A stretch of DNA of 64,000 bases, taken from the sequence record NC_048173.1, one strand, 5' to 3'. Of this stretch, positions 8,063-63,584 are shown piece by piece. Position 1 is the stretch's first letter. Each line of letters starts with the position of its first letter. The position numbers were made by a program, and so were the translations under genes. The notes beneath the pieces are model-generated. The model was not told where the DNA came from, made no database searches, and saw only the letters and a list, made by a program, of their open reading frames with translations.

Positions 8063-8160
8063 TACGTGAGGGGTATCTCTTATGCAAGAGAGGACGTAGT
8101 GTAAAAAAACATAGACATATGTTATTTTCGTGACATCCTGCAATAAAAGAGGTCAACGTT

Positions 8161-21228: not shown

Positions 21229-21705
21229 ATGTATCTGATAGATGTAGAACGCGATAAAATCCCAGCGGGAATCTTCCCCGGTTTGAACGAATGGCTCGAT
21301 GATACCAACTCAGTGCGCACAAACCCGGTAACGTTTACGTTGGCGGTGGAAGACGATGTCGCGGTGGGTGTCTGTATTCACGAGCCCGGTCACCTCCTGT
21401 ATTTGGCGATTGCTAAGGATGAACGGCGTCAGGGTTACGGCACCAAATTATTAAAGAATGCCCTCGGCACGTTTAACGGCCCTACGTGGCTCCGTGTTGA
21501 CCCCAAAAATACCGAAGGGGTTTGCTTCTTCTCCTCCCATGGCGCTATTATAGACCGTGTACACGTCGCAGAAGAAGGTGCTGTGTATCATCGTATGGTA
21601 CTTGGTACCAAATCGAAACGTGTAATCCCGCCAGAGGAGACTTCTTTACTTCATTATTTAGCTAACACACCTGTGTTCGTTTCGGTGGCGGGTAAGATCG
21701 TATAA
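21229..21705 (+). CDS. GNAT family acetyltransferase
   Basis: Motif A LAIAKDERRQGYGTKLL and a motif-B-like VDPKNTEGVCFF. Confidence 0.8.
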   Translation: MYLIDVERDKIPAGIFPGLNEWLDDTNSVRTNPVTFTLAVEDDVAVGVCIHEPGHLLYLAIAKDERRQGYGTKLLKNALGTFNGPTWLRVDPKNTEGVCFFSSHGAIIDRVHVAEEGAVYHRMVLGTKSKRVIPPEETSLLHYLANTPVFVSVAGKIV

Positions 21706-26821: not shown

Positions 26822-26858
26822 AACGAAAATAATCTCAGATATATATTACTTTAGTGAA
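26822..26858 (+). promoter_or_regulatory. Putative early promoter, copy 2
   Basis: AACGAAAA-TAATCT-CAGATATATATTACTTT-AG-TGAA. Confidence 0.75.
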
Positions 26859-29931: not shown

Positions 29932-30408
29932 ATGGGCGAAATACGCGATGTTGAATTCGTGGTGTTTACGGATATGGACAGTGGTCTATATCGCCAACTG
30001 GAACCTCAGCTTTTGGTATTGCAAGCAGAGTTAACCAAACAAGAACTGGCATCAGTTTTTGCGGCGATGGGGATTGAACCGAGGGATATACCGCTGCCTC
30101 CGGCAAAACCGGATTGGTGGAAAGGTTCTTTATTGGTCGCGTATAACGCCGATCGTGTCCATGGGTTTGTCAGCCTTCGCAAGGACAGTGTGGAAACACA
30201 AGCGAAGATTAACAACCTCATTGTGCACCAAGAGTCTCGTGGGTTTGGGATAGCGTCTGAGTTAATGACTCGGGCGACTGAACAAGCACAAGGCGAAGGC
30301 TATACCAGCATAGTTTTAGAAGTGATGCATGACAATCCTGCGGCAGAAGCATTATACCGGAAGCTCGGCTTTGTTTTTCTGACCAAAAAGATGTGCAAAC
30401 TATTCTAA
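29932..30408 (+). CDS. GNAT family acetyltransferase (RimI-like)
   Basis: LIVHQESRGFGIASELM and NPAAEALYRKLGF. Confidence 0.9.
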   Translation: MGEIRDVEFVVFTDMDSGLYRQLEPQLLVLQAELTKQELASVFAAMGIEPRDIPLPPAKPDWWKGSLLVAYNADRVHGFVSLRKDSVETQAKINNLIVHQESRGFGIASELMTRATEQAQGEGYTSIVLEVMHDNPAAEALYRKLGFVFLTKKMCKLF

Positions 30409-30467: not shown

Positions 30468-31100
30468 ATGACAACTATTAAAAACGCCGTTGCTGGCGAA
30501 GGACGTCGCTACACCTTTAAAGTTAAGCGTTATTCGCTACCGGTTCATCTAGGTTGGTCGGCAGTCCGCATGTGGGGGCGTATTTGGAATCTTCCGCCCG
30601 GACTGACCCGACACCTTGAAGTGGAGTACATCGACCGTATTTTCAGAGACGGCGACTCTTCACAACTCCGGAACTTCATCAGCGTTTGTGCCCTGCGCCC
30701 GACCGGCCAGTCAACAGACGCAACGAAGCCCGGTGTATATTGGGATGGTGCCAATCTTTTCCATGTTGGCCAGAAATGTTCTAAACCCCGTGTGACGGAA
30801 GTCTATGTTGAGACAGCAAAACAACGCTTCATTGGCATCGAGATCGCTCTCGAGAAAGATGGGCAAGAGTTCTGCTACCAACTGCTTACGGATAAGGACG
30901 TGGATATTCGTACCTTCTACAAATATCTTTTATTTCAGAAGCACCGTATTTCGGTGCGCGGCGTAACGGGTGCCTTTGGTCACTTTGCCTCGTTACGTTT
31001 TGGACGTGACAAGCGTTTGGAGGATGAATGTATTACCACGAAATTAGACGGCTCACTGCTGCACTCTCCGCAGCAACAACGGCAAAAGATAACAGCCTAG
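30468..31100 (+). CDS. Hypothetical protein
   Basis: 210 aa, AGGAG RBS. Confidence 0.75.
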   Translation: MTTIKNAVAGEGRRYTFKVKRYSLPVHLGWSAVRMWGRIWNLPPGLTRHLEVEYIDRIFRDGDSSQLRNFISVCALRPTGQSTDATKPGVYWDGANLFHVGQKCSKPRVTEVYVETAKQRFIGIEIALEKDGQEFCYQLLTDKDVDIRTFYKYLLFQKHRISVRGVTGAFGHFASLRFGRDKRLEDECITTKLDGSLLHSPQQQRQKITA

Positions 31101-31399
31101 CCGATGTCAAGTCCGCGTTAGAAGCCATTGAGAACCCACCGCTTGTGATTCTGCAAGAACGCAAGGTTGGTCGGTCTACTCAGGCGCATCTGCGGGTCGC
31201 CATCGGTAACGACTGTTTCCACTTGCGCTGCGTTATCAGTGAACTTGCGTTTGCTGTGATGCGCTCCAGTGTGAGCATTGACGGTACGAGAAAAGAGTGG
31301 TGCTGGAATAACAAACCAGCGGATTTTAAATTCGATGCGACAGAAGACGAACGTCAAACGATGCACGAGTTTATCACCGCAATCATTAACGCGTTATAG
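31028..31399 (+). CDS. Hypothetical protein overlapping the upstream gene by 73 nt
   Basis: GGAGG RBS before ATG 31028. Confidence 0.7.
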   Translation: MYYHEIRRLTAALSAATTAKDNSLADVKSALEAIENPPLVILQERKVGRSTQAHLRVAIGNDCFHLRCVISELAFAVMRSSVSIDGTRKEWCWNNKPADFKFDATEDERQTMHEFITAIINAL

Positions 31400-32014: not shown

Positions 32015-32662
32015 ATGCAGAAACCTTTTGTAATTGCGATTGGTGGTCCCGACTATGGCGGGAAATCCACGTTTTGCAAGAAGTCCACAGAGCTGTTAGC
32101 GGCAGCTGGGTATAAAGCGGTTACTATCGGCTTTCCCAGCACCTCTGAATTAGGCTTAGCTGCCCGCGCGTCTATTCGTGCGAGTGAACCGCCTGAAGTA
32201 CAGGCCGCTAAACTGATTGCGGACTTCAAGCATCATTTGAATACGTTTGGGCAAAGCGATGCAGATGTGATTTTCCTTGACCATTTCGTCATCTCGACGA
32301 TTATGTATCAGGGCGAAGCAGGAAAAGCTGCAGTCTTTAATAGCGCGATACTGCGTCACAACTACGCCCCCTCGGTCTTCGTGGAAATCACGTGTGACTA
32401 CGAAACCATGCTAGCTCGTGCTAAGCAGCGTTTCGAAGAGAAGGGTGAAACGTGGGACGACGTGTTGACCGCGAAATATACCTCTACTCCGGAGAACTGG
32501 GACGCATTAGTGCAGCGAAGTGAATTCGCCCACCGGATTGTTACTGACTCAGGCGAACGTCGGGATTGGATTCGTTTAAATCCCCACTGGCAAACCAGCG
32601 ATGCAATGCAACTGGTTCTGAAGTTGGTCAATACGTTTGAGCACGAACGCCAGCCGGCTTAA
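32015..32662 (+). CDS. tmk: Thymidylate kinase-like dNMP kinase
   Basis: P-loop GGPDYGGKST; FLDHFVISTIMYQG corresponds to the DRY..S..AYQG motif. Confidence 0.75.
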   Translation: MQKPFVIAIGGPDYGGKSTFCKKSTELLAAAGYKAVTIGFPSTSELGLAARASIRASEPPEVQAAKLIADFKHHLNTFGQSDADVIFLDHFVISTIMYQGEAGKAAVFNSAILRHNYAPSVFVEITCDYETMLARAKQRFEEKGETWDDVLTAKYTSTPENWDALVQRSEFAHRIVTDSGERRDWIRLNPHWQTSDAMQLVLKLVNTFEHERQPA

Positions 32663-32668
32663 GATGCA

Positions 32669-32690
32669 CGTCCTGACTTCGGTCAGGACG
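32669..32690 (+). terminator. Terminator hairpin
   Basis: CGTCCTGAC-TTCG-GTCAGGACG. Confidence 0.7.
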
Positions 32691-32706
32691 ACATCAATTA
32701 TTTTTT

Positions 32707-32729
32707 CAGATATATTTTATTTTGATGAA
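32707..32729 (+). promoter_or_regulatory. Putative early promoter, copy 3 (upstream of the GNAT trio)
   Basis: CAGATATATTTTATTTTGATGAA aligns without gaps to copies 1 and 2. Confidence 0.6.
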
Positions 32730-32777
32730 AATAACATGACAAAGTTATGCTATGCCGAAGAACCGTGGAGTAATAAA

Positions 32778-33635
32778 ATGAAGACCGTGGAATTAACCTT
32801 GTCGCATTTACATCGCAGCGAATGGATTAAACAATTGAATGCGATGTCAGAACAATACCCCGTTCGCAAGACGTTACTGGACATGAAAAAGAAAGACGTC
32901 AAAATTGCTATTCAGGTGAACGACGATAATAAACTGATGGCATTCCTTGCGTTAATCCCAACCGGTGTCCCGGGTGACTGTATGGGGCTGTGCTTCGGTA
33001 ATGCGCCGGGTGCGACGCCGAGCTTTGCAGAGGAAGCCATGCGCCTGTTCGACTTCAAAGTCCTGCGCATGCAAGTACCGCAGAAACATTTCCACCCTGA
33101 GGCAGAGCGCCTTGGCATCATGAAGAATTTCAATCTGCTCCATCGTCGCCTTCCTCCAGTAGGAGAAGCACCGGTAGGGACAGAACTGATTAGCGGCGAA
33201 GTCTTCCAAACCTTATCAGGTGAAGATATCGTTGCCGTGCGCGACCTCCTTACCTACGCCGTGAGTGTAGAAGAGAAGTTCGACAAACTGGGCCGCGACC
33301 ATCTCAGTCACTATAACAGCCAGCATGTCTTAAACCGCATGGACGACTTGGGCTTCTTTGCTCTGGTCTACCGTGTTGAGGGCAAAGTGTCAGGCTTGAT
33401 TACCGCACAGGCTGGTTGTGAGTGGGTCGAGATAAACGGACTGGCTGTTGCGCAAGAGCATCAGCGTAAAGGTATTGGCAGTAAATTAGTAAATGGGCTG
33501 ATTCATCTGGTCAAAGAGTATTACGACCAGCATGCGGCCATGGTATTCACCAACAACCTCCCGTCGTTGGCGTTATTCGAAAAACTAGGATTCGTTGAAG
33601 AGTCCGCACTATTCATGAAAATCGTTGAGGATTAA
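32778..33635 (+). CDS. Tandem-GNAT acetyltransferase 1
   Basis: GGAG RBS at ATG 32778; C-terminal GNAT with LAVAQEHQRKGIGSKL and NNLPSLALFEKLGF; degenerate N-terminal GNAT-like half. Confidence 0.85.
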   Translation: MKTVELTLSHLHRSEWIKQLNAMSEQYPVRKTLLDMKKKDVKIAIQVNDDNKLMAFLALIPTGVPGDCMGLCFGNAPGATPSFAEEAMRLFDFKVLRMQVPQKHFHPEAERLGIMKNFNLLHRRLPPVGEAPVGTELISGEVFQTLSGEDIVAVRDLLTYAVSVEEKFDKLGRDHLSHYNSQHVLNRMDDLGFFALVYRVEGKVSGLITAQAGCEWVEINGLAVAQEHQRKGIGSKLVNGLIHLVKEYYDQHAAMVFTNNLPSLALFEKLGFVEESALFMKIVED

Positions 33636-33638
33636 TAG

Positions 33639-34508
33639 ATGGAATATGTACAGTTAGATGTTACGAGTGAAGCACCAATGCCCCTGTTCTCAGAAGAGAT
33701 GCAACATCTCATTTATGGCATGGCCATGCAGGGTGGTCTGGTGTTCTTCGCACGTGATGAAGAAGCCGAAGAAGTTAAAGGCGTTCTTGGCGTGTTTCAG
33801 TCACATTTCCCGGGCGTGATTGAAGTGGGCATGATGTACACATTCGGTGATAATGTGGATGGTGTCATTACGCGTGAGTTCATTGACTTTATCATGAAAG
33901 CCACCGGTGCGAAAGTGATACGTTGTCAGCTCAGTGATGACCCGAGTCGGGAACTGGTTGCAGGTCTGGGCTTTACTCACGAGTCGACCATTCAAGGTAT
34001 CGATTTGGGTGAGCCGGTGGAGCAGGCGACAGAGGGTGTTATCAGTATTGCCGGTAAAGGTTTTGATTACCTCAATATCGAGCAGCGTAATCAACTGCGT
34101 CATCTGATTCGCCTGGGTGCAGAAGATGAGTCGAGCTACACGCCGAACCTGCACATTCCAAGCGACAGCGACATTGACACTATCTTCTCTGATATTGCCG
34201 AGTCGAAATATGACGTGTACGTGCGTCTGGAAGAGGATGCAGTTATCGCCCTGTTGATGATTGACCCGTCCAATCCGCAGTCTGCAGTTATCGGTTCGGT
34301 GGTGGTGCATCCTGACCATCGCTTAAAGGGTATCGGCCGTATGCTGGTCGCACAGGCTGTCTCTGACTACGGTGATGCCGAGCGTTTAGTGCTGGCGGTG
34401 ACCTTGCAATCCACACCGCATCTGCGTGAGTTCTTCGGTAACTGTGGATTGATTCCAGTTGCCACCGTGCACAAATTTGCCTCAGACGAGGTGCAGGAGG
34501 TCGCATGA
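33639..34508 (+). CDS. Tandem-GNAT acetyltransferase 2
   Basis: VVVHPDHRLKGIGRMLV and EFFGNCGL; N-half ends AGLGF. Confidence 0.85.
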   Translation: MEYVQLDVTSEAPMPLFSEEMQHLIYGMAMQGGLVFFARDEEAEEVKGVLGVFQSHFPGVIEVGMMYTFGDNVDGVITREFIDFIMKATGAKVIRCQLSDDPSRELVAGLGFTHESTIQGIDLGEPVEQATEGVISIAGKGFDYLNIEQRNQLRHLIRLGAEDESSYTPNLHIPSDSDIDTIFSDIAESKYDVYVRLEEDAVIALLMIDPSNPQSAVIGSVVVHPDHRLKGIGRMLVAQAVSDYGDAERLVLAVTLQSTPHLREFFGNCGLIPVATVHKFASDEVQEVA

Positions 34509-35395
34509 TAGTAGCCGGGCACAAATCCGATATTCCTGCCGTCGTGTGGGAAAGTGCTATCAAAAAGATGCCGGACGAAATTGTTCGGCAGTCCCGTCAC
34601 GCTAACATCAAGTTCATTATTGAAACTGATGACGATGGCGAGGTGGTTGCGTTTGCCGTCGGTGAAACCATGACGGTGTATTATGTCATGGCAGGTATCT
34701 ACACTGTCGACGACTGCCCGAGCCCGAATTTCATGGCGGAAGGTATGCGTCAACTGGGGTTAAAGGTCGCTACGCTGTCAGTAGAGTCTGACGATGAAGT
34801 GTTTAAAGAGATAGGCTTTGTTGTCGCCAATCGCCTTTACGCTTCTACGCCAGAAGTGCCGCTTGATACACCGGCCTTTGTTACCAGCATGGATCTCGTG
34901 CCAGAGTGTGATTGGCCGAAATACGAAATGCTGATGGCGATGGACTTAGAAGTTCATAAACCGACAGAAGACGGTCGGGGATATGAAGCACCGTGTCGTG
35001 AACTGTTTAAGAAAATCAAAGCCAATCCTGAATTGGCAGTGGTGAAACTGAAAGACGGACGACTGCATGGCATCATGATGATGATGAAGTCATTGATGCG
35101 CCCTGACGACTGTACACCGCTGTTACAGGCCGATCTTTACGTCCCGCAGGCATTGTTAGCCTTACCGAGTGAACCCGGTGAGTTAACCATTCCTGATGAA
35201 TTGCTGCATTACGCTACTCGACTGTTAGAGTCGCAAAATAAGCGCATGGTCATCCAGTCTGAACGGGAAGACGGTGAAATTTATTTACGAGATGTGCTGA
35301 AATACCAATATATTTACAGCACGTGCCAGTATTACGTCCAGGAAGAGGACGAACTGGTTGAAGCAACCGCAGATGCTATGGACGACCCATCCTGA
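34505..35395 (+). CDS. Degenerate tandem-GNAT paralog 3
   Basis: N-half aligns with paralog 1 (PNFMAEGMRQLGLKV vs PSFAEEAMRLFDFKV; KEIGF); lacks the R/Q-x-x-G-x-G motif. Confidence 0.6.
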   Translation: MIVAGHKSDIPAVVWESAIKKMPDEIVRQSRHANIKFIIETDDDGEVVAFAVGETMTVYYVMAGIYTVDDCPSPNFMAEGMRQLGLKVATLSVESDDEVFKEIGFVVANRLYASTPEVPLDTPAFVTSMDLVPECDWPKYEMLMAMDLEVHKPTEDGRGYEAPCRELFKKIKANPELAVVKLKDGRLHGIMMMMKSLMRPDDCTPLLQADLYVPQALLALPSEPGELTIPDELLHYATRLLESQNKRMVIQSEREDGEIYLRDVLKYQYIYSTCQYYVQEEDELVEATADAMDDPS

Positions 35396-35474: not shown

Positions 35475-35741
35475 ATGAGTCAGAATATTAACCGCAAAGT
35501 CAGTGCCAAGAAAGATGTGTACTATGCCGTGGATGAGGTCGTTCGCGGGGTGATTGACAAGTCTGGTGTCTTACACCTCGCAGTGGCCGACGAGGTTTCA
35601 CGTGCAGACCGTCGCATGTTGAAACAGTTGGTCATCAAGGCAAAGCACCGCGACGGTGTTCGTAGCGTCAAGGAAATTCCCGGCACTACAATGGAATTGG
35701 TGGACGGTGAGATTCACGTAAGACGTACCGCGGCAGCATAA
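35475..35741 (+). CDS. Hypothetical protein
   Basis: GGAG RBS, 88 aa. Confidence 0.75.
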   Translation: MSQNINRKVSAKKDVYYAVDEVVRGVIDKSGVLHLAVADEVSRADRRMLKQLVIKAKHRDGVRSVKEIPGTTMELVDGEIHVRRTAAA

Positions 35742-35792
35742 CGCTGTCTACGAACGCCGGTGGCGGTAGTAACGTCACTCAAGGGGGTTCGT

Positions 35793-35948
35793 ATGTCTGT
35801 AGCTATCCTGACGGGTGCATTAATCTCCGCGTTCGTATGGGAGTGCATGACTTGGTTTTTTCGACTGGGCGGCATTCCCGTACTTCAGCGTGTAGGTATG
35901 ATGGGGGTCTGGGTCGGTTTCTATTATGCCCTGTTCCACATCGATTAA
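35793..35948 (+). CDS. Small two-TM membrane protein
   Basis: AAGGGGG RBS; two hydrophobic stretches. Confidence 0.65.
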   Translation: MSVAILTGALISAFVWECMTWFFRLGGIPVLQRVGMMGVWVGFYYALFHID

Positions 35949-35980
35949 TAATAAGTTGATTCCTCTGGGAGTAGAGAATC

Positions 35981-36169
35981 ATGTCGTTTAACGTAGCAAT
36001 TGTACCACAACGTAAATTTGGTGCCGCACGGCGGGTTAGTGCCATCCAGCTTTACGCACAGCGCAACAATCTCGACTACAACGTAGCAGCAAGTCAGCTG
36101 GCGGACACGCCTCTCAACGATATCCTTCGTGAGCTCGGTCTTTTACCGAAAGAAGAAGCTGCAGTTTGA
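35981..36169 (+). CDS. Hypothetical 62-aa protein
   Basis: GGAG RBS; terminator downstream. Confidence 0.7.
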   Translation: MSFNVAIVPQRKFGAARRVSAIQLYAQRNNLDYNVAASQLADTPLNDILRELGLLPKEEAAV

Positions 36170-36176
36170 TTTAGTG

Positions 36177-36212
36177 GGCGTCCTCTTCGGGGGACGTCAT
36201 TTTATCTTTTTT
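36177..36212 (+). terminator. Rho-independent terminator
   Basis: GGCGTCCTC-TTCG-GGGGACGTC plus T tract. Confidence 0.75.
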
Positions 36213-37163: not shown

Positions 37164-38192
37164 ATGGAACAGTATCAAGATTTAATGACTCGCGTAATGA
37201 GCGAAGGCGTGCCGAAGAAAGACCGTACGGGAACCGGTACCCTGTCTATTTTCGGGCACCAGATGCGTTTCAATCTGCAAGAAGGCTTTCCGCTGGTAAC
37301 GACTAAGCGCTGTCACATGCGTTCGATTATTCACGAACTGCTGTGGTTCCTGAAAGGCGATACCAATGTCAAATATTTAAATGATAATGGTGTAACTATT
37401 TGGGACGAATGGAAGAACAAAGATGGCGACCTCGGACCGGTATACGGTAAACAGTGGCGGTCTTGGCCTGTTATCCGTGCTGTGCCTTACGAACAGTTCA
37501 ACGAATTAACTGCTGCCGGTTATGAAGACCTCGATGCCGGCACGTGGAGCATGGATGAAAATTGCTCGCTTTATTTTGTCCGAACTCAGATCGACCAAAT
37601 CTCCAAGGCCATGGACCAGTTGAAAAACGACCCGGATAACCGTCGTATCATCGTGTCGGCATGGAACGTAGCTGACCTCGACGAAATGGCTTTAGCACCG
37701 TGCCACGCATTCTTCCAGTTCTACACGCGTGAACTGACACATGAAGAACGTGAGCAGTGGCTGGACGAACACCGTCCCGGCGAGTGGGCAAAGATACAAC
37801 GCCTGTGCGGTATTGACCCTGAGACAGGTTACCACGACATCTTCGACTCTGAGGGTGTTCCTGACCGTCAGTTATCGTGTCAGCTTTATCAACGCAGCGC
37901 CGATGTGTTCTTAGGGGTGCCGTTTAATATTGCGTCATACGCTTTGTTGATCCACATGTTTGCACAGCAGGCTAACATGACCGTGGGTGATTTCGTCTGG
38001 TCTGGTGGTGACGTACATCTGTACAATAACCATCTGGAACAAACCCGTACCCAGTTAGGTCGTGCCCCGCGTCCGTTACCTAAGCTGATTATCAAACGTA
38101 AGCCAGACTCCATCTTCGAATATAAGTTTGAAGACTTCGAACTTGAAGGCTACGACCCGCATCCTGCAATCAAAGCACCGGTCGCGATATGA
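37164..38192 (+). CDS. thyA: Thymidylate synthase ThyA with two insertions
   Basis: [56 protein letters not shown]-terminal IKAPVAI. Confidence 0.97.
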
Positions 38193-44267: not shown

Positions 44268-44290
44268 CAGATAGATATTATCTGTATGAA
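44268..44290 (+). promoter_or_regulatory. Putative early promoter, copy 4
   Basis: CAGATAGATATTATCTGTATGAA aligns to copies 1-3; also contains the inverted repeat TACAGATA/TATCTGTA. Confidence 0.6.
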
Positions 44291-52274: not shown

Positions 52275-53075
52275 ATGAGGTCAGGCACATTAGAGAATTT
52301 AATCTCACTAATTAATTCCGCTAACTCAGCTGAAACACCCATCGCACTTGAAGATGTCGACGTTTCAGTACCGTATGCGGTTAACAAAGACGGTTGCAAC
52401 ACCGAGGTGGAAGTCACCATCAAACCGACTTATTTCCCGTTACGAGGGAAGCAGACTTTTCGCTACAATCGCCTCCCCATTGACACAGTGGTAAAAGGTG
52501 ATTTGGAGCTGTACATGGACCCGGAGATGCGGAACAGTTACGACATGATTCCGTACCTCAACCAACAGCTCAACATCGAACTGACTGAAAACGACGTCAT
52601 TAACGACCCGGTCACTGGACAGCAGCACGCCTTCCGTGCCGCCTCCACGTCCTACCAATGGAAAGACCTGGCGTTGGTGTTGTTAAAGCAAGCGACGCCG
52701 CTCGACGAGGTTATCCTCACGACCGCGCTTGACGGTTTAAAATACCCCGACACGCAAGACCCGAAAGGACAAGCGTCAGTTTACTCCTACGGGATTGACT
52801 GTTCGCGCATTGCACCGTTCCTTTGGGTTATGGATGCCGGGGTGGACTTTGACGATACGGCATTAGCCGCCGAGTTCAATAAAACCGTACCCGAACTTTG
52901 GGTCTCTGCCCCGGAAGCAGCTCCTTGGAACCTACGTGGCTCGAAATGTGTCTACGAAGGTTTAACCACGGGACTGCCGGGTAGCAACACTGTGTTCAAA
53001 CGCGTGGTGTCAATCGAACTGGGCCCGCTCTGCAGTAACTTCGCAGGCACCCTTAACTTGCACTACAATCCGTGA
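52275..53075 (+). CDS. Tail/baseplate paralog 1
   Basis: LINSAN, GCNTEV, FRYNRLPI, LNQQLNIELTENDV, STSYQWKD, LDGLKYP, YSYGIDC, LNLHYN. Confidence 0.8.
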   Translation: MRSGTLENLISLINSANSAETPIALEDVDVSVPYAVNKDGCNTEVEVTIKPTYFPLRGKQTFRYNRLPIDTVVKGDLELYMDPEMRNSYDMIPYLNQQLNIELTENDVINDPVTGQQHAFRAASTSYQWKDLALVLLKQATPLDEVILTTALDGLKYPDTQDPKGQASVYSYGIDCSRIAPFLWVMDAGVDFDDTALAAEFNKTVPELWVSAPEAAPWNLRGSKCVYEGLTTGLPGSNTVFKRVVSIELGPLCSNFAGTLNLHYNP

Positions 53076-53084
53076 GGTTAAAGG

Positions 53085-53927
53085 ATGGCTAAGTACACTA
53101 AAACCTCCAACGAGATGTTGCTCGATGCGATTAACATCGAAAACAACCTGCAGAATGATCCACTGACGTGGAATCAGATTGCGGCCGGCTTTCCCGAGAA
53201 GGTAACAACACCGGGTGCCGACCGAAACACTCGTTTACTTATCTACGGACTGAAGCAGGGTGGTTATAAAGGCACGGTCACGTTACAGTACGACCGTATC
53301 TCGCTGCCAGCTATCTTCCGTAATGTAACCCCGGTGGTAGTGACCAACCCTGTGCAGTTGCTGAGCCAGCTGCTGCCGCAACTCAACAAAGCGTACGGGC
53401 TGTCGTTAGACAAAGACGATATCCTTGAGCAGTCGGTTGCGGACTTAGGGGAAGACTTCCTGATTAACGTCCAGCTGCGACCTGGCTGTTTGGCGTGGGA
53501 AGGGGATTTTGAATTACGCTTTACCAAGTTCCGTCCGAAACTGAAAGACATCATTGCCGATGCTGTGCTGGATGTCATCGTAGCGCCGTTCCCTATTGGA
53601 ACGAAGCCCCGTGCCGAGTATGTAACCTACGGGTATGACTACTCCACGATGGGAGAAACGTTTAAAACGTGGGCCATTAATCGGACATTAACGCAGGACG
53701 ATATTGACGAACTGAACGAAACCGTGCAGGGGTTGAAACTGGTGAACAAAACCGGTGCCAATGCTTCTGCTGGGGAGATTGCGTTGTCGGGGGCGAAAGT
53801 CACCTCGATTAACAACGTGACAGACGGCAGTTTGTTTAACGTGCTGTACGAGAAGGCAATCGTGATTACACTGGCCACCACCAGTAACTACGAGGGTCAG
53901 CTTATCCTTCACTACTCTGCGCTTTAA
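53085..53927 (+). CDS. Tail/baseplate paralog 2
   Basis: INIENN, RNTRL, YDRISL, LNKAYGL, CLAWEG, YGYDY, LILHYS. Confidence 0.8.
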   Translation: MAKYTKTSNEMLLDAINIENNLQNDPLTWNQIAAGFPEKVTTPGADRNTRLLIYGLKQGGYKGTVTLQYDRISLPAIFRNVTPVVVTNPVQLLSQLLPQLNKAYGLSLDKDDILEQSVADLGEDFLINVQLRPGCLAWEGDFELRFTKFRPKLKDIIADAVLDVIVAPFPIGTKPRAEYVTYGYDYSTMGETFKTWAINRTLTQDDIDELNETVQGLKLVNKTGANASAGEIALSGAKVTSINNVTDGSLFNVLYEKAIVITLATTSNYEGQLILHYSAL

Positions 53928-53935
53928 GGATTGCT

Positions 53936-54781
53936 ATGCCTATCTTAAAACGTCCTGAGCAGTTAATTGTCGATCGTATTAACCTTGAGAATAAGACCGA
54001 CCTGAAGCTTACCGACGTAACCTTATTTACGCCGCGTGTGCCGACGACTGCTGAAGAGATTCAAAACGCTCAAGGTCGTAACTCGTTTGTGCGTATTGCC
54101 GCGACCCCGCTGGCTAATGCAACGGGTGCGACGTTTGTCTATTATAACCGTCTCGATTTCACGGCGATGTTTACCGATGAGACGGGGATTCAACCGTTGG
54201 TCGTGCCGGTCGACTTCGACACTGTCTTTACTGCATGGGATGTCGTGCCGTTCATTAACCAGTATTACGGGTTGATGCTCGAACCGAAAGACGTGCTGGA
54301 AGAAACCATCAACCGGGGTGACTGGACGGTGCAGCTGAAAGCGCATCCCGACTCCCTCGGCTGGGTGGGTGAAGTGCCGGTGCAGTTGGTGCGTGGTGAC
54401 GCGTTGGTACCGACGAACTTCACGGATGTGAAGATTGCGCCGTATGCCTATCCGTACTTCAACACGAAAGTCGGGCAAGGTGCTATTTACTCTTACCCGT
54501 GGCGTTTCGATAACTTTGCGGCGGAACTGCAGGGCATGGGAACCACCACCAATGAAACGCGTTTGGCACAGATTCTTAAGTCTGTGACTGCGGATAACTG
54601 GATGGTGTACCGTAGCCCGGTGGACTTCAACCTTAAAGAAGCCACGGTGGTTTATAACGGCAAGAACAGCCGTGACCTCCCAACGAACCCCTCGGTTGAC
54701 AACGTGATGGTTATCGAGTTGTCGCTGTATTGTCTCAACTTTGGCGGGCGCTTGTACCTGCATTACAATGACCCTGAATAA
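53936..54781 (+). CDS. Tail/baseplate paralog 3
   Basis: INLEN, RNSFV, YNRLDF, INQYYGL, DSLGWVG, LYLHYNDP. Confidence 0.8.
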   Translation: MPILKRPEQLIVDRINLENKTDLKLTDVTLFTPRVPTTAEEIQNAQGRNSFVRIAATPLANATGATFVYYNRLDFTAMFTDETGIQPLVVPVDFDTVFTAWDVVPFINQYYGLMLEPKDVLEETINRGDWTVQLKAHPDSLGWVGEVPVQLVRGDALVPTNFTDVKIAPYAYPYFNTKVGQGAIYSYPWRFDNFAAELQGMGTTTNETRLAQILKSVTADNWMVYRSPVDFNLKEATVVYNGKNSRDLPTNPSVDNVMVIELSLYCLNFGGRLYLHYNDPE

Positions 54782-54794
54782 GGAATAACGTTAA

Positions 54795-55715
54795 ATGAAA
54801 CCGTTAAACAAAACCTCCGATTTGCTGGTACTGGATCTCATCAACGAAGCGAACGTCGATGCCGACCTCGACCTGACCAAAGTCATCCTGCTACCCCCAG
54901 TCGATAACGATGAAGAAGGCGCTGACCGTAACAGTAAGCTGACTGTCAAAGCACGTAAGAACTCCGGCTTCATTAAGACGCAGGATGTGACTTATGACCG
55001 CCTGCAGGGTGAAGCGCTGTTCCGCAACATCGCTGCTTACCTCGATGTTAAACTGCCAACCTCTTCTACCGACCTGCTCGACCAGCTGAACAAACAGTAC
55101 GGTCTGAAGATTCAGGCAGAAGATATCGTTCCAGCCCCGATCGCGGCAGATACCAACCCGCCACTGACCGACCCGGAAGAGGATGCACCGCCTGCTGTGC
55201 AACACGTCATTACCTTTAAAGACGACTGCTACGCGTTCAAAGGTGCTATCAACGTCCTTATCGGCGAGCGTCCACAGGTGGGTGAACGCCTGTCTCTGGT
55301 TATCACCAAAACCAAACTGGACGGTCTGCAGTACCCTGATGGCAAAACAGACGAGAAAGGTCAGGCGTACATCTACTCTTACGGCACCGACTGCACCGCG
55401 ATTATGGGCTTCCTCAGCAAGCTGGCTGTAGGCACCCCGCTGGATGACACCGCGACTGCCACCGAGCTGAACAAAGTGTTCCCGGAAGAGTGGGTAGCGG
55501 TTGCTGGTACTGCTGACTACAACCTGACCGATGCTGATGTGATCTACGCGGGCTCCACTACCGAAACGGTACAAGACCCGAACGACCCACAGAACACCAT
55601 CACTCAGGATGTCCCGGGTGCAGACATGTCCTTCAACTCCATCGTGAAGCTGAAACTGTCTGACTCTGCGTGCGCGAACTTCCAGGGCGAGTTGTTCTTG
55701 CATTACAACGCATAA
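54795..55715 (+). CDS. Tail/baseplate paralog 4 (strong codon bias, likely abundant)
   Basis: INEAN, RNSKL, YDRLQG, LNKQYGL, LDGLQYP, LFLHYN. Confidence 0.8.
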   Translation: MKPLNKTSDLLVLDLINEANVDADLDLTKVILLPPVDNDEEGADRNSKLTVKARKNSGFIKTQDVTYDRLQGEALFRNIAAYLDVKLPTSSTDLLDQLNKQYGLKIQAEDIVPAPIAADTNPPLTDPEEDAPPAVQHVITFKDDCYAFKGAINVLIGERPQVGERLSLVITKTKLDGLQYPDGKTDEKGQAYIYSYGTDCTAIMGFLSKLAVGTPLDDTATATELNKVFPEEWVAVAGTADYNLTDADVIYAGSTTETVQDPNDPQNTITQDVPGADMSFNSIVKLKLSDSACANFQGELFLHYNA

Positions 55716-55722
55716 TGCTACC

Positions 55723-55762
55723 CCGGGGGAGATTTCTCCCCCGGTTCATCTGCTATTTTTGA
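55723..55762 (+). terminator. Terminator hairpin
   Basis: CCGGGGGA...TCCCCCGG followed by a T tract. Confidence 0.6.
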
Positions 55763-55778
55763 TTAGAAGGATGGTATT

Positions 55779-56780
55779 ATGCCAAGTCCATATGCCAAGT
55801 CTTCACAGCAACTGTTCTGGGACTTGGTAAACGCATCAAACCCGCAGTTGAAGATTCCTTTGTCGGACGCCAACTGTGTTATTTACGGCTATCCGCAAGC
55901 AGTCACCTCAAATGCGGCATCGGGTTATCGCAATACCAAGATTCGTTTGTATGCGAAAGTGGGGATGGGGTATAAAGGCGAGGTTTCTGTCTACTATAAC
56001 CGCCTGAATATTGCCAGCTTCTTTGTGGGCATCACTCCGACTGTTACGCATTACACTGCAAACACCCCAGCACTTGTAATGGATGTGTTTAATGCCACGT
56101 ACGGCTTGCAGTTGACATACGCCAACCGGTCCTGGACTGACTCCACGCCCGCCTGGACGTTAGGGATGACAATTCCGGACATCATGATGTATAGCTCATC
56201 GTACCAAGCCGGGGCAGCCAGTAGTGACAACACCAAACGCTACACGACGGCAAACGAATCGCTGTGTTGGGTGGGGGGTACTAACCTTGACATCAGTCGT
56301 ATTCGCGGCAACCCTGACTACGGTACGTTGATTACGAAGCCTGAGATTGTGACCATGCGTAAAGTGCCGGTACAAACGCCTAACACGTACAATACCGCTT
56401 TACTGACGTGGGGTTACGATTTCACTGATAAGCAAACCACCATCGCTAACTTCCTATCCTCGCCAACGAACCGCACTTATCAGTTGGCGTTGGCGCAGAT
56501 GCTGGCGGATGTGACGGGTCTTCCTTTTGCATGGGGGAACGGTGGTGCTGCCGGGGCTTTAGATTTGCAAGGATTTACGCAGCAGCAGGCGCAGCTGGCC
56601 CTCGGAACGCGTTATCACACCAATACCGATGATTATAACCGCTGCTTAATGTTGTACCGCGACACGACGCCATTAGGTGCTGGTTGGTCTACAGACGGCT
56701 GGCAGGGAATGAACGGTGACCAAGATGACGTCAACAATACCGTGTTCCGTCACATGGTCTTTATGCACTACAACGCTTAA
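55779..56780 (+). CDS. Tail/baseplate paralog 5
   Basis: VNASN, RNTKI, YNRLNI, FNATYGL, WGYDF, FMHYN. Confidence 0.8.
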   Translation: MPSPYAKSSQQLFWDLVNASNPQLKIPLSDANCVIYGYPQAVTSNAASGYRNTKIRLYAKVGMGYKGEVSVYYNRLNIASFFVGITPTVTHYTANTPALVMDVFNATYGLQLTYANRSWTDSTPAWTLGMTIPDIMMYSSSYQAGAASSDNTKRYTTANESLCWVGGTNLDISRIRGNPDYGTLITKPEIVTMRKVPVQTPNTYNTALLTWGYDFTDKQTTIANFLSSPTNRTYQLALAQMLADVTGLPFAWGNGGAAGALDLQGFTQQQAQLALGTRYHTNTDDYNRCLMLYRDTTPLGAGWSTDGWQGMNGDQDDVNNTVFRHMVFMHYNA

Positions 56781-56792
56781 CCGGAGTAAGAA

Positions 56793-57683
56793 ATGTCACG
56801 CAATCTATTTTATTACACCGGTTTAGAGCGAGTGATGCGGGCGATAACACTGGCCAACGGGTTAACTAACCTGACGACATCAAACTGCGTTATCTCCAAA
56901 CCGGCTCCGATTTCAGGCAGTTGGAAAGAGAACACCACCACCAAGAACACGGTTGTGAAAATTTCTCAGACTATCCCGGCTGTTACGTACAACGGTAAAA
57001 ACTGGGTCACGTATGACCGTGTTCCTATAGCGTCGATGTTGAACCAGTTACCTAACGCCGCCACCCTCAAAGTCGACCATCCTGCGAATGTTTATGCGCT
57101 GCTCCGCGCGATTAACCGTCGTTGGGGTATCGGGTTGGAAGAAGCGGACGTTATCAACGACCCTATCACGCTGGATGGCGACGGTAAAGCTACCGTCACG
57201 ATGATGATACACCCAGACAGTTATTTGTACACTGGGAGTTTCACCTTCAATATCGTGCCGGGTGATGCCAACTTGGACGAGAACGTCACGGTGACCACGT
57301 TGTCGGGTATGAACTACCCTGACGGTAACACAGCCGCGCTGGGCGGCAGTAAAGGCTATGCCCAACCGTACAGCTACAGCTTCGACTTCACGTTGAAAGA
57401 AGCCGAACTGCGCGCGCTGAAAGTGGGGACAGACCTTGGGACACTGGCGGACATTCTGACGTACATCACGAAAACCACGTGGACGAATGGCGCTTCGGAT
57501 GCGGATAACGCGTACACCGTGCTCGGCTCGGAAATCCTGTACAATGGTTTGAACTCATCCAGTTACCCGACCAGTTCCGCCTTTAAGTATCTGGTGATTG
57601 TGAAGATGGGTCCACGGAGCAAACTGCAAGGGAACATGTACCTGCAGTTTAATGATAAGGACGACCCGAACTCCCCTAACTAA
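56793..57683 (+). CDS. Tail/baseplate paralog 6
   Basis: KNTVV, YDRVPI, INRRWGI, DSYLYTG, MYLQFNDKDDP. Confidence 0.8.
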   Translation: MSRNLFYYTGLERVMRAITLANGLTNLTTSNCVISKPAPISGSWKENTTTKNTVVKISQTIPAVTYNGKNWVTYDRVPIASMLNQLPNAATLKVDHPANVYALLRAINRRWGIGLEEADVINDPITLDGDGKATVTMMIHPDSYLYTGSFTFNIVPGDANLDENVTVTTLSGMNYPDGNTAALGGSKGYAQPYSYSFDFTLKEAELRALKVGTDLGTLADILTYITKTTWTNGASDADNAYTVLGSEILYNGLNSSSYPTSSAFKYLVIVKMGPRSKLQGNMYLQFNDKDDPNSPN

Positions 57684-57694
57684 CGGAGGCTGCT

Positions 57695-58513
57695 ATGGCT
57701 TTGTATAGCCAGTCTCAGCAACAGTACATGGTGGATGCCATTAACGCCCGTAACCCGGGCGCTATCAGTTTACTGACCCTGAAGAATTGCTTCATCGGTA
57801 AACCGAAGGCTATCACCCCAAAACTACCGGGCGACCCCAACACGGAAATCGTGGTACGTGGCCGGCCGGGAAGTGGGTACATCGGTTCGCAAACGTTCCA
57901 ATATACTCGCTTGTCGCTGAGTGATTTGTTTAAGAACTTCACCCCTGTTATCACCATGCCGGGCATCGGCGTCACTCAACAGGCGGTAGCCAACATTAAC
58001 GGGCGTTACGGGTTGAACCTTGTGCCTGAAGATGTGGTGTCGTATTACCTGTACCGCAACTCGTTAAGCCCGCTGCGGGTGTATGGCACGAGCCTGCAAT
58101 ACGTGGGTAGCGTCAACATCAAATACGTACCGGGCCCGTACAGTCTGGAAGAACTGGTGGTCAACAACATCTTAAATGAGATGAACCATCCGATTGATCC
58201 AGACGACGGGAAACTCTGCGGTACCATGCTGGCCTACGGCGTGGACTTTACTGACGAATACCAGTTACTCGGTTCCTTCGCAACAGGTGCTATGGGTACG
58301 GGGTCGAACTTCACCTCGGGCCGTAGTGATTCGTTGGTTGACATGATGGAAGCCCGCGGCCTCCCACGCTGGGACTTCACCGGTGCGCGAGCGCAGGTCA
58401 AAACCACAGCCAACGAACCGCGTGCGAATAAAAAGTTCGACCGTGTTCTCGTGATTACGTTAGTCAACGACCCTCACGTGGCTGGCGATTGGTTACTCCA
58501 CTACAATATTTAG
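57695..58513 (+). CDS. Tail/baseplate paralog 7
   Basis: INARN, PNTEI, YTRLSL, INGRYGL, YGVDF, WLLHYN. Confidence 0.8.
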   Translation: MALYSQSQQQYMVDAINARNPGAISLLTLKNCFIGKPKAITPKLPGDPNTEIVVRGRPGSGYIGSQTFQYTRLSLSDLFKNFTPVITMPGIGVTQQAVANINGRYGLNLVPEDVVSYYLYRNSLSPLRVYGTSLQYVGSVNIKYVPGPYSLEELVVNNILNEMNHPIDPDDGKLCGTMLAYGVDFTDEYQLLGSFATGAMGTGSNFTSGRSDSLVDMMEARGLPRWDFTGARAQVKTTANEPRANKKFDRVLVITLVNDPHVAGDWLLHYNI

Positions 58514-58525
58514 TAGGAAACGAAA

Positions 58526-59404
58526 ATGGCAATTTATCAACCATCGAAAGATGTGCTGTTGGCCGCCGTTAATTCGCAGAACTCCCTGACGATTAAACTG
58601 ACCGACATTACCTACAGCGCACCCAAGGACATTCGTGGAACAGACCAAGAGTCTACCACCCAGCGTAACACGTTGGTGAAAATCACCGCAACCCCAACCG
58701 GTTCGTGGACAGGCAAAAAGAACCTGTTTTATAACCGCTTGAAAGTTGAAGATATCCAGACTCTTATTGGCGACACGCTGCAAGTGGGTAGCGTTACCCA
58801 TCTGCACGATGCGCTAATCGGTCTGAATAACCGTTACGGGTTTGCGTTTGAAGCTGTAGATGTGGAAAACACAGAACTGGAATGGGAACCGGACGGTCTG
58901 AGTGGTTTTCTGGATATCACTGCCAAAACTGACTCACTGGGTTGGATTGGGAGTGCGCGCTTTAAACTGGCGAAAGGTGATGAGTCGCTGCAGTCTGCAG
59001 TTACAACCACCACCCTGAACGGTCTGAAGTATCCGAACGGCGACATGGGTTCTGTTGCACAGACTGCGGTTCTGGCAGAAATCTATTCTTATCCGTTTGA
59101 TCACACCGCGAACCGTGATGCGCTGTTGGTATACCAGCCGGGTGTATTGGCTGCAGGCGCTGACCTGAACAACCTCGTTACACTGCTAAATGGTATCACG
59201 GGCACAACGTGGGTAGCGACGAATGCCGCCTCGTGGGGTCTGCTGGGTGCAGAAATCACCTATAACGGACTCAACAAAACCGAGTTCCCAACTAACACCA
59301 AGTACAAGTACGCAATGGCTATCAAGCTGCCTGCGACGACCACGAACATTAAGGGCACCCTGTACGTCCAGTATAGCGACCCTGACGACCCGAACGAGGT
59401 GTAA
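58526..59404 (+). CDS. Tail/baseplate paralog 8
   Basis: VNSQN, RNTLV, YNRLKV, LNNRYGF, DSLGWIG, LYVQYSDPDDP. Confidence 0.8.
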   Translation: MAIYQPSKDVLLAAVNSQNSLTIKLTDITYSAPKDIRGTDQESTTQRNTLVKITATPTGSWTGKKNLFYNRLKVEDIQTLIGDTLQVGSVTHLHDALIGLNNRYGFAFEAVDVENTELEWEPDGLSGFLDITAKTDSLGWIGSARFKLAKGDESLQSAVTTTTLNGLKYPNGDMGSVAQTAVLAEIYSYPFDHTANRDALLVYQPGVLAAGADLNNLVTLLNGITGTTWVATNAASWGLLGAEITYNGLNKTEFPTNTKYKYAMAIKLPATTTNIKGTLYVQYSDPDDPNEV

Positions 59405-59407
59405 TCT

Positions 59408-60235
59408 ATGTTGTCCTACAAAAAGCCCTCTAACGAGCTGGTATACGACCTGATTAACCTCGCCAACCCTGACCTGCCGGTACCGGTTTCTGCTGCTAAC
59501 GTTATCATCGAGAAAATCACCGATGTGGCGGTGAACGCGGCATCAAACCAACGTAACACATCGGCCCGTTTGCGCGGCGTTCAGGGTGCAGGGTATACTG
59601 ACTCGGTAACGCTGTATTACGACCGCATTAACTTAGCAACCATTATACCGGTGTATAACCAGTCGAAGGCAGGGTTCACGACCTTTACGGCGACAAACGT
59701 ACACGGGGCGCTGGCAGCTATCGAAGAAGCCTTCGGTGTTAATTTCGGCACGATGGATGTGGTGAACACTGGTTTAGCGGGTGCAAACTCGCCAGACTAT
59801 TCTTCGCAGTTTACGTTAAGTGCCCAGCCTAACTCCCCAGCATATCGGGGTTCGCAGGGTGTGCGTTATTACCGCGGTAAGCCGGTTCTTGATACGTCCA
59901 TTACCAAAGATGTATTGAGTGCGCTGACACATCCTATCGATGAAACTCTCAACAAGAAGTGCGTTGACTTGTTGACGTATGGTATCGACTTCACGGCGTA
60001 CAAAAACCTGTTGAACGTTACAGCGGCGGGTCTACCTAACTGGGCAGGTCTGCGTACCGTGCTAGATCAGCTGGGTATTCCGCAGTACGCGGGTCCCCTG
60101 AACTCGAACACTGTGCAGGATGTTGCGACCTCCACCATGCCAACGGCGAATAAGAACTTCGACCGTGTTGTGGTGCAGACCGGTATCGACGATGTCGGTG
60201 TGAAAGGCGTGGCGTACTACCACTACAACAGTTAA
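59408..60235 (+). CDS. Tail/baseplate paralog 9
   Basis: INLAN, RNTSA, YDRINL, NSPAYRG, YGIDF, YYHYN. Confidence 0.8.
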   Translation: MLSYKKPSNELVYDLINLANPDLPVPVSAANVIIEKITDVAVNAASNQRNTSARLRGVQGAGYTDSVTLYYDRINLATIIPVYNQSKAGFTTFTATNVHGALAAIEEAFGVNFGTMDVVNTGLAGANSPDYSSQFTLSAQPNSPAYRGSQGVRYYRGKPVLDTSITKDVLSALTHPIDETLNKKCVDLLTYGIDFTAYKNLLNVTAAGLPNWAGLRTVLDQLGIPQYAGPLNSNTVQDVATSTMPTANKNFDRVVVQTGIDDVGVKGVAYYHYNS

Positions 60236-60239
60236 ACCG

Positions 60240-60266
60240 TGGCCCTTCGGGGCCATTTCTTTTTTT
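60240..60266 (+). terminator. Rho-independent terminator
   Basis: TGGCCC-TTCG-GGGCCA plus T tract. Confidence 0.75.
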
Positions 60267-60276
60267 GGGAGGCGTT

Positions 60277-62687: not shown

Positions 62688-62696
62688 GGGATCAAA

Positions 62697-63584
62697 ATGG
62701 GCATTAAATTAAATTGGGTAGACCAGTCTGTCCAGAACCTCGACGCGATTGAGATTTATCGTAGTACCTCGCCTATCGATTCAGACAACCCCGGCGCACC
62801 GATTGCAACCTTACCGGGCACCGCGACGTCTTACGACGACACGACAGTAAAAAATAAAAACGTTTATTACTATCGCGTTGTCGCGAAGAAAGGAACCGAC
62901 CGTAGCTGGGGACCAAACCAGTTCACTGGGTACTTTGCTGAAACCGGTCCGGGACGTCCCACACCATTGCGTGGCGATTGGAAAGCTGCGCTAATGGACA
63001 TTCTTGCCCCTGCAGATTTCATCACGAATGCTGCGTTGCGTGCGAAGGTGCCAGCTTTAGCCGCATTAACTGCAGGAGGAGAGCCCTCAGGCTGGTTTAA
63101 GATGTTTTGGAAAGGCAAAGTTTTCTTTGTGCCGAACGCAAACCTGATTACGGCGTCGTGGGGACAGGTGTACAATGCTGGGTTAGTGTACGGGGTTGAC
63201 GGTGTTGGTGACCGCCCGGCCGGTATTGGCGCGGGCACGGTGAATCAAAAAGTCACTGTGGACATCGGTGGCCGTCGTTACTTGATTCGTTGCCCGAAAC
63301 TTTCTTCGCTGCCCGAAACGTCTTTCGCCACCACACAGGCTGATACCCTCGGCTCCGAGTGGCGCGATACGATGGCACGTATGGTGCGAGAAACGGTAGA
63401 CCCACAACCGGGAAGTCTGACGCGACTGTATGATAATACGTCACTTCCCAACTTCTTCGGTTCCCACTACACGTCGGCTGGAAACATTATCATCCTGACG
63501 GGGACAAAACCTGAAAGCTACGCATCCATTGCAGGCGCAACTGCCGCCAGCGTTGGACTGGTATTAGAACTCATCATGCCGTAA
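62697..63584 (+). CDS. Tail protein with an FN3-like N-domain, paralog of the upstream gene
   Basis: IKLNWVD..IEIYR..YDDTTVKNKNVYYYRV; GPGRPTPLRGDW, WFKM. Confidence 0.8.
   Translation: MGIKLNWVDQSVQNLDAIEIYRSTSPIDSDNPGAPIATLPGTATSYDDTTVKNKNVYYYRVVAKKGTDRSWGPNQFTGYFAETGPGRPTPLRGDWKAALMDILAPADFITNAALRAKVPALAALTAGGEPSGWFKMFWKGKVFFVPNANLITASWGQVYNAGLVYGVDGVGDRPAGIGAGTVNQKVTVDIGGRRYLIRCPKLSSLPETSFATTQADTLGSEWRDTMARMVRETVDPQPGSLTRLYDNTSLPNFFGSHYTSAGNIIILTGTKPESYASIAGATAASVGLVLELIMP

Follow-up and report, generated by a model that had tools for sequence, protein, structure and literature searches.

Three tandem GNAT paralogs, one a predicted pseudo-enzyme, behind a probable early promoter in Derbicusvirus jumbo phages

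The DNA analysed here is a stretch of 64,000 nucleotides from sequence record NC_048173.1, hereafter called the window, in which positions are counted from the first letter. At 32707–35395 it carries three consecutive plus-strand genes, g1, g2 and g3 (gp102, gp103 and gp104), which an initial annotation made from the sequence alone had described as an early operon of three paralogous tandem GCN5-related N-acetyltransferase (GNAT) proteins, two intact and one apparently catalytically dead. The observation was confirmed as accurate and its structural reading as largely right. The trio is most simply read as a three-fold expansion, specific to this lineage, of the tandem GNAT of jumbo phages; one member is predicted to be a pseudo-enzyme, and a probable early promoter precedes the genes. 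It amounts to a gene-family expansion and not a novel kind of system. In the reading that we favour, with a probability of roughly 60%, the expansion is specific to Derbicusvirus and the expression, the pseudo-dimer fold and the role in acylating host targets are as proposed below.

The sequence of 32707–35395 is 100% identical in the Erwinia phages vB_EamM_EarlPhillipIV and Derbicus, 92% identical in pEa_SNUABM_38 and ∼74% identical in Cronobacter phage CR5. These four and Phobos make up the genus Derbicusvirus, myoviruses of 224–230 kb that belong to the phiKZ/SPN3US-related jumbo phages. Split RNA polymerase β subunits are encoded by the phage itself. More than half of the CR5 genes are common to SPN3US, a phiKZ-related giant phage (PMC5105663), and a phage nucleus is formed by a CR5-like Enterobacter phage (bioRxiv 10.1101/2024.10.29.620934). 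In GenBank, gp102 and gp103 were previously labelled 'putative GCN5-related N-acetyltransferase' and gp104 a hypothetical protein; a literature search on EarlPhillipIV found nothing relevant. Few early genes of nucleus-forming jumbo phages have an assigned function, and three of them now receive a fold, an evolutionary history and a prediction, namely a catalyst that stays constant, a paralog that evolves fast and a pseudo-enzyme under constraint.

g1 and g2 as tandem GNAT proteins

The three open reading frames (ORFs) were found where they had been placed, g1 at 32778–33635 (285 amino acids, aa), g2 at 33639–34508 (289 aa) and g3 at 34505–35395 (296 aa). Pfam Acetyltransf_1 matches g1 at aa 187–272 (E = 4e-14, 53.2 bits) and the g1 paralog g2 at aa 183–270 (E = 8e-10, 39.4 bits), against a cut-off of 20.7. 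Both proteins match phrog_8663 from end to end (g1, residues 1–285, 6e-107; g2, residues 1–289, 3e-89), and their family profiles align with each other in hhalign at 97.5% probability (E = 8e-12). Motif A, defined as Q/R-x-x-G-x-G/A between β4 and α3, forms the acetyl-CoA pyrophosphate loop. A single match to [QR]xxGx[GA] is present in each protein, QRKGIG in g1 (aa 229–234, nt 33462–33479) and RLKGIG in g2 (aa 228–233, nt 34320–34337), both in the C-terminal domain, as had been noted from the sequence; the N-domain loops of the two proteins (NAPGATPS and DNVDGVIT) do not fit the motif. By this measure the C-terminal domain of g1 and g2 is the one that alone appears catalytically equipped, in line with the C-domain rule for tandem GNATs, the characterised members of which are active in the C-terminal domain alone (PMC10936415).

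An AlphaFold2 (AF2) model of g1 built from an 11-sequence alignment (pLDDT 88.5, pTM 0.79) contains two β-α-α-β-β-β-α-β-α-β halves, the N-domain spanning about aa 1–125 and the C-domain about aa 135–285. In a Foldseek search of the PDB, the best matches of this model were Legionella VipF (6WQB, E = 2.4e-14), CBG of the clavulanate cluster (2WPW), the mycothiol synthase MshD (1OZP) and MAB_4324 (7Q3A), all full-length, with E values of 2e-14 to 9e-12 for VipF, CBG and MshD. In BFVD, the g1 model matched an independent model of Derbicus g2 with a TM-score (TM) of 0.77 and a model of Kwan gp131 with a TM of 0.75. The models thereby bear out the proposed tandem architecture and support the view that g1 and g2 are each a pseudo-dimer of two GNAT domains.

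The tandem GNATs VipF, MshD, CBG and GlmA (5KF1) resemble the trio in having a chain of ∼290 aa with two GNAT domains, and as a group they are the best structural matches of the g1 model over its full length (E = 2e-14 to 1e-9). However, g1 is only 12–16% identical to them, and the trio differs from all four in being phage-encoded and in comprising three adjacent paralogs, one of which is without the CoA motif. The Eis-like PDB entries 3N7Z, 2I00 and 2HV2 match the g1 model at a low TM of 0.32–0.36; Eis-like proteins have three domains (GNAT-GNAT-SCP2) and 380–400 aa, in contrast to the two domains and 285–296 aa of the trio. Mom gave no signal in any search of the trio. Of the likeness to Eis and Mom that had been suggested, nothing beyond the general fold was found.

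Family models leave the trio without a subfamily. Against NCBIfam, g1 and g2 gave generic GNAT matches only, all sub-threshold (17–27 bits against cut-offs of 86–300). The MshD model TIGR03448 scored 17.1 bits with g1 and 24.9 bits with g2 (cut-off 163.1), and the PaiA model scored 19 bits with g1 (cut-off 250) and did not match g2 or g3. No PADLOC model of defence or counter-defence matched g1, g2, g3, gp97 or gp105. With NCBIfam scores so far under the cut-offs and no PADLOC match, a subfamily assignment is impossible. Word-indexed protein searches with g1, g2 and g3 returned 3–5 clusters each, all Derbicusvirus-like.

These scores bear on the proposal that g1 and g2 acetylate small molecules such as polyamines, aminoglycosides or amino sugars. 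The structural neighbours MshD, GlmA, CBG and the Eis-like proteins do act on small molecules, weak NCBIfam matches are to AAC(3)-I, PaiA and phosphinothricin acetyltransferase, and spermidine acetyltransferases are known in related Erwinia phages (PMC9992855). However, the NCBIfam matches are those far below their cut-offs, and the phage enzymes that were tested are short proteins found with SpeG/BltD-type queries, whose positional counterpart is gp97 and not the trio (PMC9992855). We consider small-molecule acetylation by g1 and g2 quite unlikely; were the three proteins to act separately on small molecules, the trio would be an ordinary family expansion.

gp97 (29932–30408) is a single-domain GNAT of 158 aa, with RimI as its best, sub-threshold NCBIfam match. 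It follows the internal head protein, as does a 154-aa acetyltransferase of SPN3US. In a screen for spermidine N-acetyltransferases, the candidates of the Erwinia phages Caitlin and phiEaH2 were active and the SPN3US 154-aa protein was inactive (PMC9992855). An orthology of gp97 with that SPN3US protein was considered and rejected, as the two align over the generic GNAT core alone (27% over 55 aa). By analogy with the family tested in related phages (PMC9992855), polyamine acetylation more plausibly suits gp97 than the trio, for which a polyamine substrate had also been suggested.

The third paralog and the history of the trio

g3 is the degenerate member of the trio. No match to [QR]xxGx[GA] is present in g3 or in any of 8 distinct g3 orthologs, in agreement with the reported lack of motif A. 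Under a relaxed alignment threshold, the g3 loop that faces g1 motif A is PSEPGELTIPDE (nt 35165–35200), which is acidic and variable. g3 falls in phrog_22414 instead of phrog_8663 and has invariant motifs of its own that are absent from g1 and g2 (PTExGRG.E, ESQN and QYIY).

Despite this divergence, a g3 profile of 5 sequences aligned with the joint g1+g2 profile of 11 sequences in hhalign at 92.9% probability (E = 3.7e-7), over 182 colinear columns in which g3 13–196 faces g1 14–213. The score was 54.6, a z of ∼14 over 40 block-shuffled controls, which averaged 16.0±2.8 and reached at most 24.5; with the profile reversed, the score was 15.6. The alignment reproduces exactly the register that had been given for the N-halves (PSFAEEAMRLF, REFIDFIMKAT and PNFMAEGMRQL), and the best-conserved region common to all three proteins is the α3-β5-α4 segment of the N-domain. 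When a g3 hidden Markov model (HMM) was run against 651 phage ORFs, the only significant non-self match was g1 (E = 1.4e-4). An AF2 model built from g3 orthologs only, and hence unbiased by g1 and g2, has a pLDDT of 61.4 and an order of elements that mirrors g1; for this weak model, the top 50 PDB matches are all of the GNAT superfamily, including tandem and FemX-type proteins (E = 2e-4 to 7e-3, TM 0.2–0.5).

That g3 might be unrelated to g1 and g2, its similarity being chance or compositional, has to be weighed against these results. BLASTP between single sequences gives borderline values (E = 0.001 and 0.43), the profile alignment A2 versus A3 alone gives 4.8% probability, and an exhaustive HMM search with g3 over 1.84 billion representatives recovered 3 clusters and drew no GNAT. 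On the other side stand the profile–profile E value and its distance from the shuffles, the colinear columns, g1 as the best match proteome-wide, a g3-only model that matches GNAT-superfamily folds exclusively, and the equal length, element order and adjacent position of g3. An unrelated g3 is very improbable. The profile comparison supports g3 as a remote but real paralog of g1 and g2, as had been claimed, and the model suggests that it likely has a GNAT fold.

A GNAT fold without active-site residues that serves in binding or assembly is known from the C-terminal domain of chimallin, a protein of nucleus-forming phages, and from the inactive N-domains of tandem GNATs (PMC9365700, PMC10936415). 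g3 would fit this pattern of GNAT-fold pseudo-enzymes, but, unlike those domains, it would be a free-standing two-domain protein next to paralogs that are predicted to be active. In Phobos, the tblastn match to g3 (6001–6879) runs ∼40 nt beyond the annotated stop of gp104 (278 aa), and the acidic C-terminal tail of g3 is absent from Phobos and from the lineage of the metagenomic contig L005.

The three genes are conserved to very different degrees. g1 is the most conserved (76.8% identity to CR5), g3 is ∼76% identical to CR5, and g2 is the fastest-evolving member (49.8% identity to CR5 and 42–50% between lineages). Non-synonymous divergence (dN) from CR5 is 0.17, 0.46 and 0.17 for g1, g2 and g3, respectively. 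The ratio of non-synonymous to synonymous change (ω) between EarlPhillipIV and pEa_SNUABM_38 is 0.014 for g1, 0.069 for g2 and 0.059 for g3, and ranges from 0.059 to 0.083 for g3; all three genes are under purifying selection. Motif A is present in 7/7 g1 orthologs. In g2 it is present in the isolate-type sequences and lost in the divergent metagenomic proteins P0011 and P0012 (RLKDFG and RLNDYG). In both of these g2 proteins (P0012 is encoded at 5953–6843 of L005), Asp replaces the first glycine of the motif, and g2 may be turning into a pseudo-enzyme in that lineage, to judge from this substitution.

Synteny of the trio extends to all known relatives (five lineages), L005 among them, and no split trio was found in these. 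The internal head protein comes first, then the single GNAT, three small genes and the dTMP kinase, and finally g1, g2 and g3. A scan of IMG/VR returned three known isolates only. In the SPN3US-like phages (Seoulvirus, Wellingtonvirus and others; 53 records), a single homolog of 317–332 aa occupies the syntenic position downstream of the dTMP kinase. The representatives SPN3US ACQ60_gp162 and Kwan gp131, both of phrog_8663, align with the joint g1+g2 profile at 98.6% probability in hhalign (E = 1.3e-15), and the SPN3US protein aligns with g1 at E = 2.7e-11 and with g2 at 9.5e-8. The SPN3US-like protein thus shares homology and neighbourhood with g1 and g2, but it is one copy, longer, and followed in SPN3US and Kwan by a Dam-type methyltransferase instead of paralogs; in SPN3US, three unrelated genes lie between the dTMP kinase and the tandem GNAT.

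Because these relatives have only one homologous tandem GNAT in the corresponding place, origin by local duplication, the 'triplication' of the initial annotation, is likely, and a Derbicusvirus-specific tandem expansion is the simplest history that the sequences suggest. Neighbours of the tandem GNAT in SPN3US (region L011 1721–8372) and Kwan (region L010 2428–9028) were considered as hidden counterparts of g2 and g3 and rejected; compared as single sequences and as 2–3-sequence profiles, they gave hhalign scores at noise level against g2 and g3, and one is a genuine Dam-type methyltransferase. In these regions, Kwan gp133 and SPN3US gp160 are homologous to each other, and Kwan gp128–130 and SPN3US gp167 form another weak family. 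The g1 model also has fold-level matches in BFVD (E = 1e-12 to 6e-7) to uncharacterised proteins of 213–278 aa from Kwan, phiEaH2 and other phages; no sequence-level link of these proteins to g1–g3 was found, and their accessions could not be mapped to genes. On a reading that is unlikely, such matches would point to a hidden, sequence-scrambled family of GNAT-fold binders in nucleus-forming enterobacterial jumbo phages, which would echo the GNAT-derived domain of the nuclear-shell protein.

The tight coupling that had been described for the trio was found at both junctions. The g1 stop codon TAA is followed by TAG, a gap of 3 nt, and then by the g2 ATG; g2 and g3 overlap in ATGA, which is preceded by GGAGG; and a GGAG-type Shine-Dalgarno sequence stands at each of the three starts. 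This arrangement bears on the heteromeric acetyltransferase of the initial annotation, taken as an obligate complex: the catalytic g1 would work with g3, and possibly also g2, as a pseudo-enzyme subunit for specificity or scaffolding. Gene order and tight translational coupling are kept in five lineages despite the 42–50% identity of g2, g3 is non-catalytic by sequence yet constrained, the N-domain α3-β5-α4 segment is the region that all three proteins conserve best, and the graded loss of motif A suggests that the paralogs can do without catalysis. However, tandem GNATs satisfy the usual GNAT dimer interface internally, and the characterised MshD, VipF and GlmA each work as one chain (PMC10936415); genes are moreover closely packed throughout this genome. 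We regard an obligate heteromer as rather doubtful. Its more specific form, a hetero-oligomer in which g3 and the fast-evolving g2 would aim g1 at host targets early in infection, in the manner of catalytic-plus-auxiliary N-acetyltransferase complexes, is unlikely.

Alternatively, the three proteins might work independently, g1 and g2 acetylating different targets and g3 being a stand-alone binder or decoy of a host protein or metabolite. The very unequal rates of the three genes and the invariant motifs of g3 that have no counterpart in g1 and g2 are consistent with such a division, and one copy suffices in SPN3US-like phages. Against it, the trio is never split among the known relatives, which are only five lineages. 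Independent action is a possibility that we keep in view, short of thinking it probable.

Promoter, transcription unit and nearby nucleotide genes

Reading into g1, the first element past the dTMP kinase gene is a plus-strand intrinsic-terminator hairpin at 32669–32690, with a 9-bp GC-rich stem and a UUCG loop, followed by a T-run at 32697–32706; it is predicted to end the dTMP-kinase transcript. The hairpin is kept in 5 phages, the changes in Phobos being G-U-compatible, and 32660–32782 has an RNA fold z of −3.97. Directly after it lies the AT-rich promoter-like motif CAGATATATTTTATTTT (32707–32723, plus strand), with a T-rich tract upstream; its first base coincides with the coordinate at which the initial annotation had begun the operon. 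The motif is nearly invariant in 5 phages. A degenerate pattern, CAGATATATWTTAYTTT, is matched exactly 3 times in the window; with ≤3 mismatches allowed, the count is 6, where 0.41 would be expected. The fixed consensus CAGATATATATTACTTT, again with ≤3 mismatches, has 6 sites in the whole genome, all intergenic and on the plus strand, and each has RTGA (ATGC in one case) at a constant distance downstream. Overall, the 224-kb genome holds about 6–8 copies of the motif, on the plus strand only. Other copies or variants in the window lie at 1237–1253, 8112–8128, 26836–26852 and 44268–44284, in each case immediately behind a terminator hairpin and in front of genes whose function is unknown; three further copies lie outside the window, at 154505, 161133 and 222910 of NC_031007.

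The early promoters of phiKZ, 201φ2-1 and AR9 have an AT-rich element near −10 and, upstream of it, a T-rich tract, and they occur in few copies, before genes of unknown function, where they are read by the injected virion polymerase (PMC7598289, PMC8244752, PMC11512511). The sequence features of this phiKZ-type class of virion RNA polymerase (vRNAP) promoters were found here, namely the AT-rich motif, the T-rich tract and the intergenic copies on one strand. The part of the 'early-type promoter' claim that stands is that a phage-specific motif resembling described vRNAP promoters precedes the trio; 'early' is a reasonable inference by analogy and not a demonstration, and we treat the motif as a putative vRNAP early promoter.

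A conserved 5′ leader (32724–32777, plus strand) connects the motif to g1. It contains the blocks GAAAATAACAT and ATGCTATGCCGAA and the conserved Shine-Dalgarno sequence GTGGAG (32765–32770), which sets the start of g1; an in-frame ATG further upstream is not conserved. Aligned across 5 phages, the region 32655–32790 (139 columns) has a mean column identity of 89%, above that of the flanking coding DNA. The proteins flanking the region are only 42–77% identical across the five phages. An Rfam scan gave no match in or near the trio locus.

Downstream, g3 is followed by three small genes, gp105–107 (35475–36169, plus strand; 88, 51 and 62 aa, annotated in NC_031007), which are syntenic across all relatives. 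The next strong terminator-like site past the trio is a plus-strand hairpin at 36177–36198 (9 pairs, 6 of them GC, with a T-rich tail). Because no terminator stands between g3 and 36177, gp105–107 probably share a transcript with g1–g3. The three-gene operon of the initial annotation accordingly holds in that the trio is coupled behind a promoter motif, but its end does not: with no terminator after g3, the unit probably adds gp105–107.

The same elements bear on the suggestion that the trio modifies nucleotides or phage DNA together with the adjacent kinase, in a Mom-like or hypermodification pathway. The genes nearby invite it, with dTMP kinase (32015–32662), thymidylate synthase (37164–38192) and MazG in the neighbourhood, and in SPN3US and Kwan the gene after the tandem GNAT encodes a Dam-type methyltransferase. 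However, the link to the kinase is weak because the conserved terminator and the promoter motif separate that gene from g1; the intervening genes of SPN3US weaken it further, and so does an ordinary thymidylate synthase, which scores 467 bits against a curated cut-off of 405. Searches of Pfam, PHROG and NCBIfam gave no Mom-like or hydroxymethylase signal. A role in nucleotide or DNA modification is accordingly hardly to be expected. The thymidylate synthase has 342 aa and aligns with the 264-aa ThyA models in 3–4 separate pieces, implying that insertions of ∼80 aa interrupt what is otherwise a canonical ThyA.

Proposed role and other genes of the window

In the Derbicusvirus-specific expansion that we favour, g1–g3, probably with gp105–107, would be transcribed from one of the few copies of the AT-rich promoter, which the injected virion RNA polymerase would read early in infection if the phiKZ-type analogy holds. 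Each of the three proteins would be a pseudo-dimer of two GNAT-fold domains. g1 would be the conserved catalyst, its C-domain acetyl-CoA loop being intact in every lineage. g2 keeps the loop in the isolates, but its non-synonymous sites change ∼3 times faster than those of g1, and the loop is gone from a divergent lineage. g3, with no loop and under purifying selection, would be a non-catalytic pseudo-enzyme that binds a ligand or a protein. The proteins would use acyl-CoA to N-acylate cytoplasmic proteins or metabolites of the host during take-over, a role suggested by phage precedents such as Rac and by the activity of tandem GNATs such as VipF on peptides and small molecules. The diverged paralogs would give different target specificities, whether in a complex or by separate action.

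AcrVA5 is a phage GNAT that acetylates Cas12a. Both AcrVA5 and Rac share with the role proposed for the trio an involvement in host take-over or counter-defence, and both differ from it in being single-domain GNATs. The phiKMV-group Rac is a precedent for jumbo-phage GNATs predicted to modify host proteins (PMC7824862, PMC13282480), and VipF is a tandem GNAT that acetylates a specific protein through its interdomain cleft (PMC10936415). If host proteins or defence factors are indeed acetylated, the trio would be a compact natural case of target-range diversification by duplication and catalytic decay, and it would open a way to study how Erwinia and Cronobacter phages under consideration as biocontrol agents take over their hosts.

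Several points weigh against this reading. No Derbicusvirus transcriptome was found in the literature searched, and the early timing of the trio stands by analogy. Expansion in Derbicusvirus competes with loss in the SPN3US-like phages; the pairwise distances among g1, g2 and the SPN3US-type genes are all long and similar. Triplication is not unusual in itself, since larger tandem paralog arrays occur elsewhere in the genome. For g3, there is no match in Pfam, NCBIfam or a PDB sequence search (even at E 10), the model is of low confidence, and a missing motif A is no proof of missing activity.

Tandem paralog arrays are common in this phage genome. Ten consecutive plus-strand ORFs of 266–460 aa at 52275–61659 are mutual paralogs (21–34% identity, BLASTP E down to 8e-46), and two further ORFs at 61671–63584 are related to each other. 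A 158-aa ORF at 21229–21705 is weakly matched by the g1+g2 HMM in the region of motif A (E = 3e-4), and by this similarity it is probably a fourth GNAT-domain gene of the phage. On the minus strand, 26569–26762 matches the Rfam family Ysr251, a Yersinia antisense small RNA, with 101.8 bits against a gathering score of 100; the match lies inside a PhoH-like gene and probably reflects similarity of phoH coding sequence and not an RNA gene. Upstream of the dTMP kinase, gp98 (30468–31100) and gp99 (31028–31399) overlap by 73 nt in different frames, and the annotations of Phobos and SPN3US show a comparable overlap.

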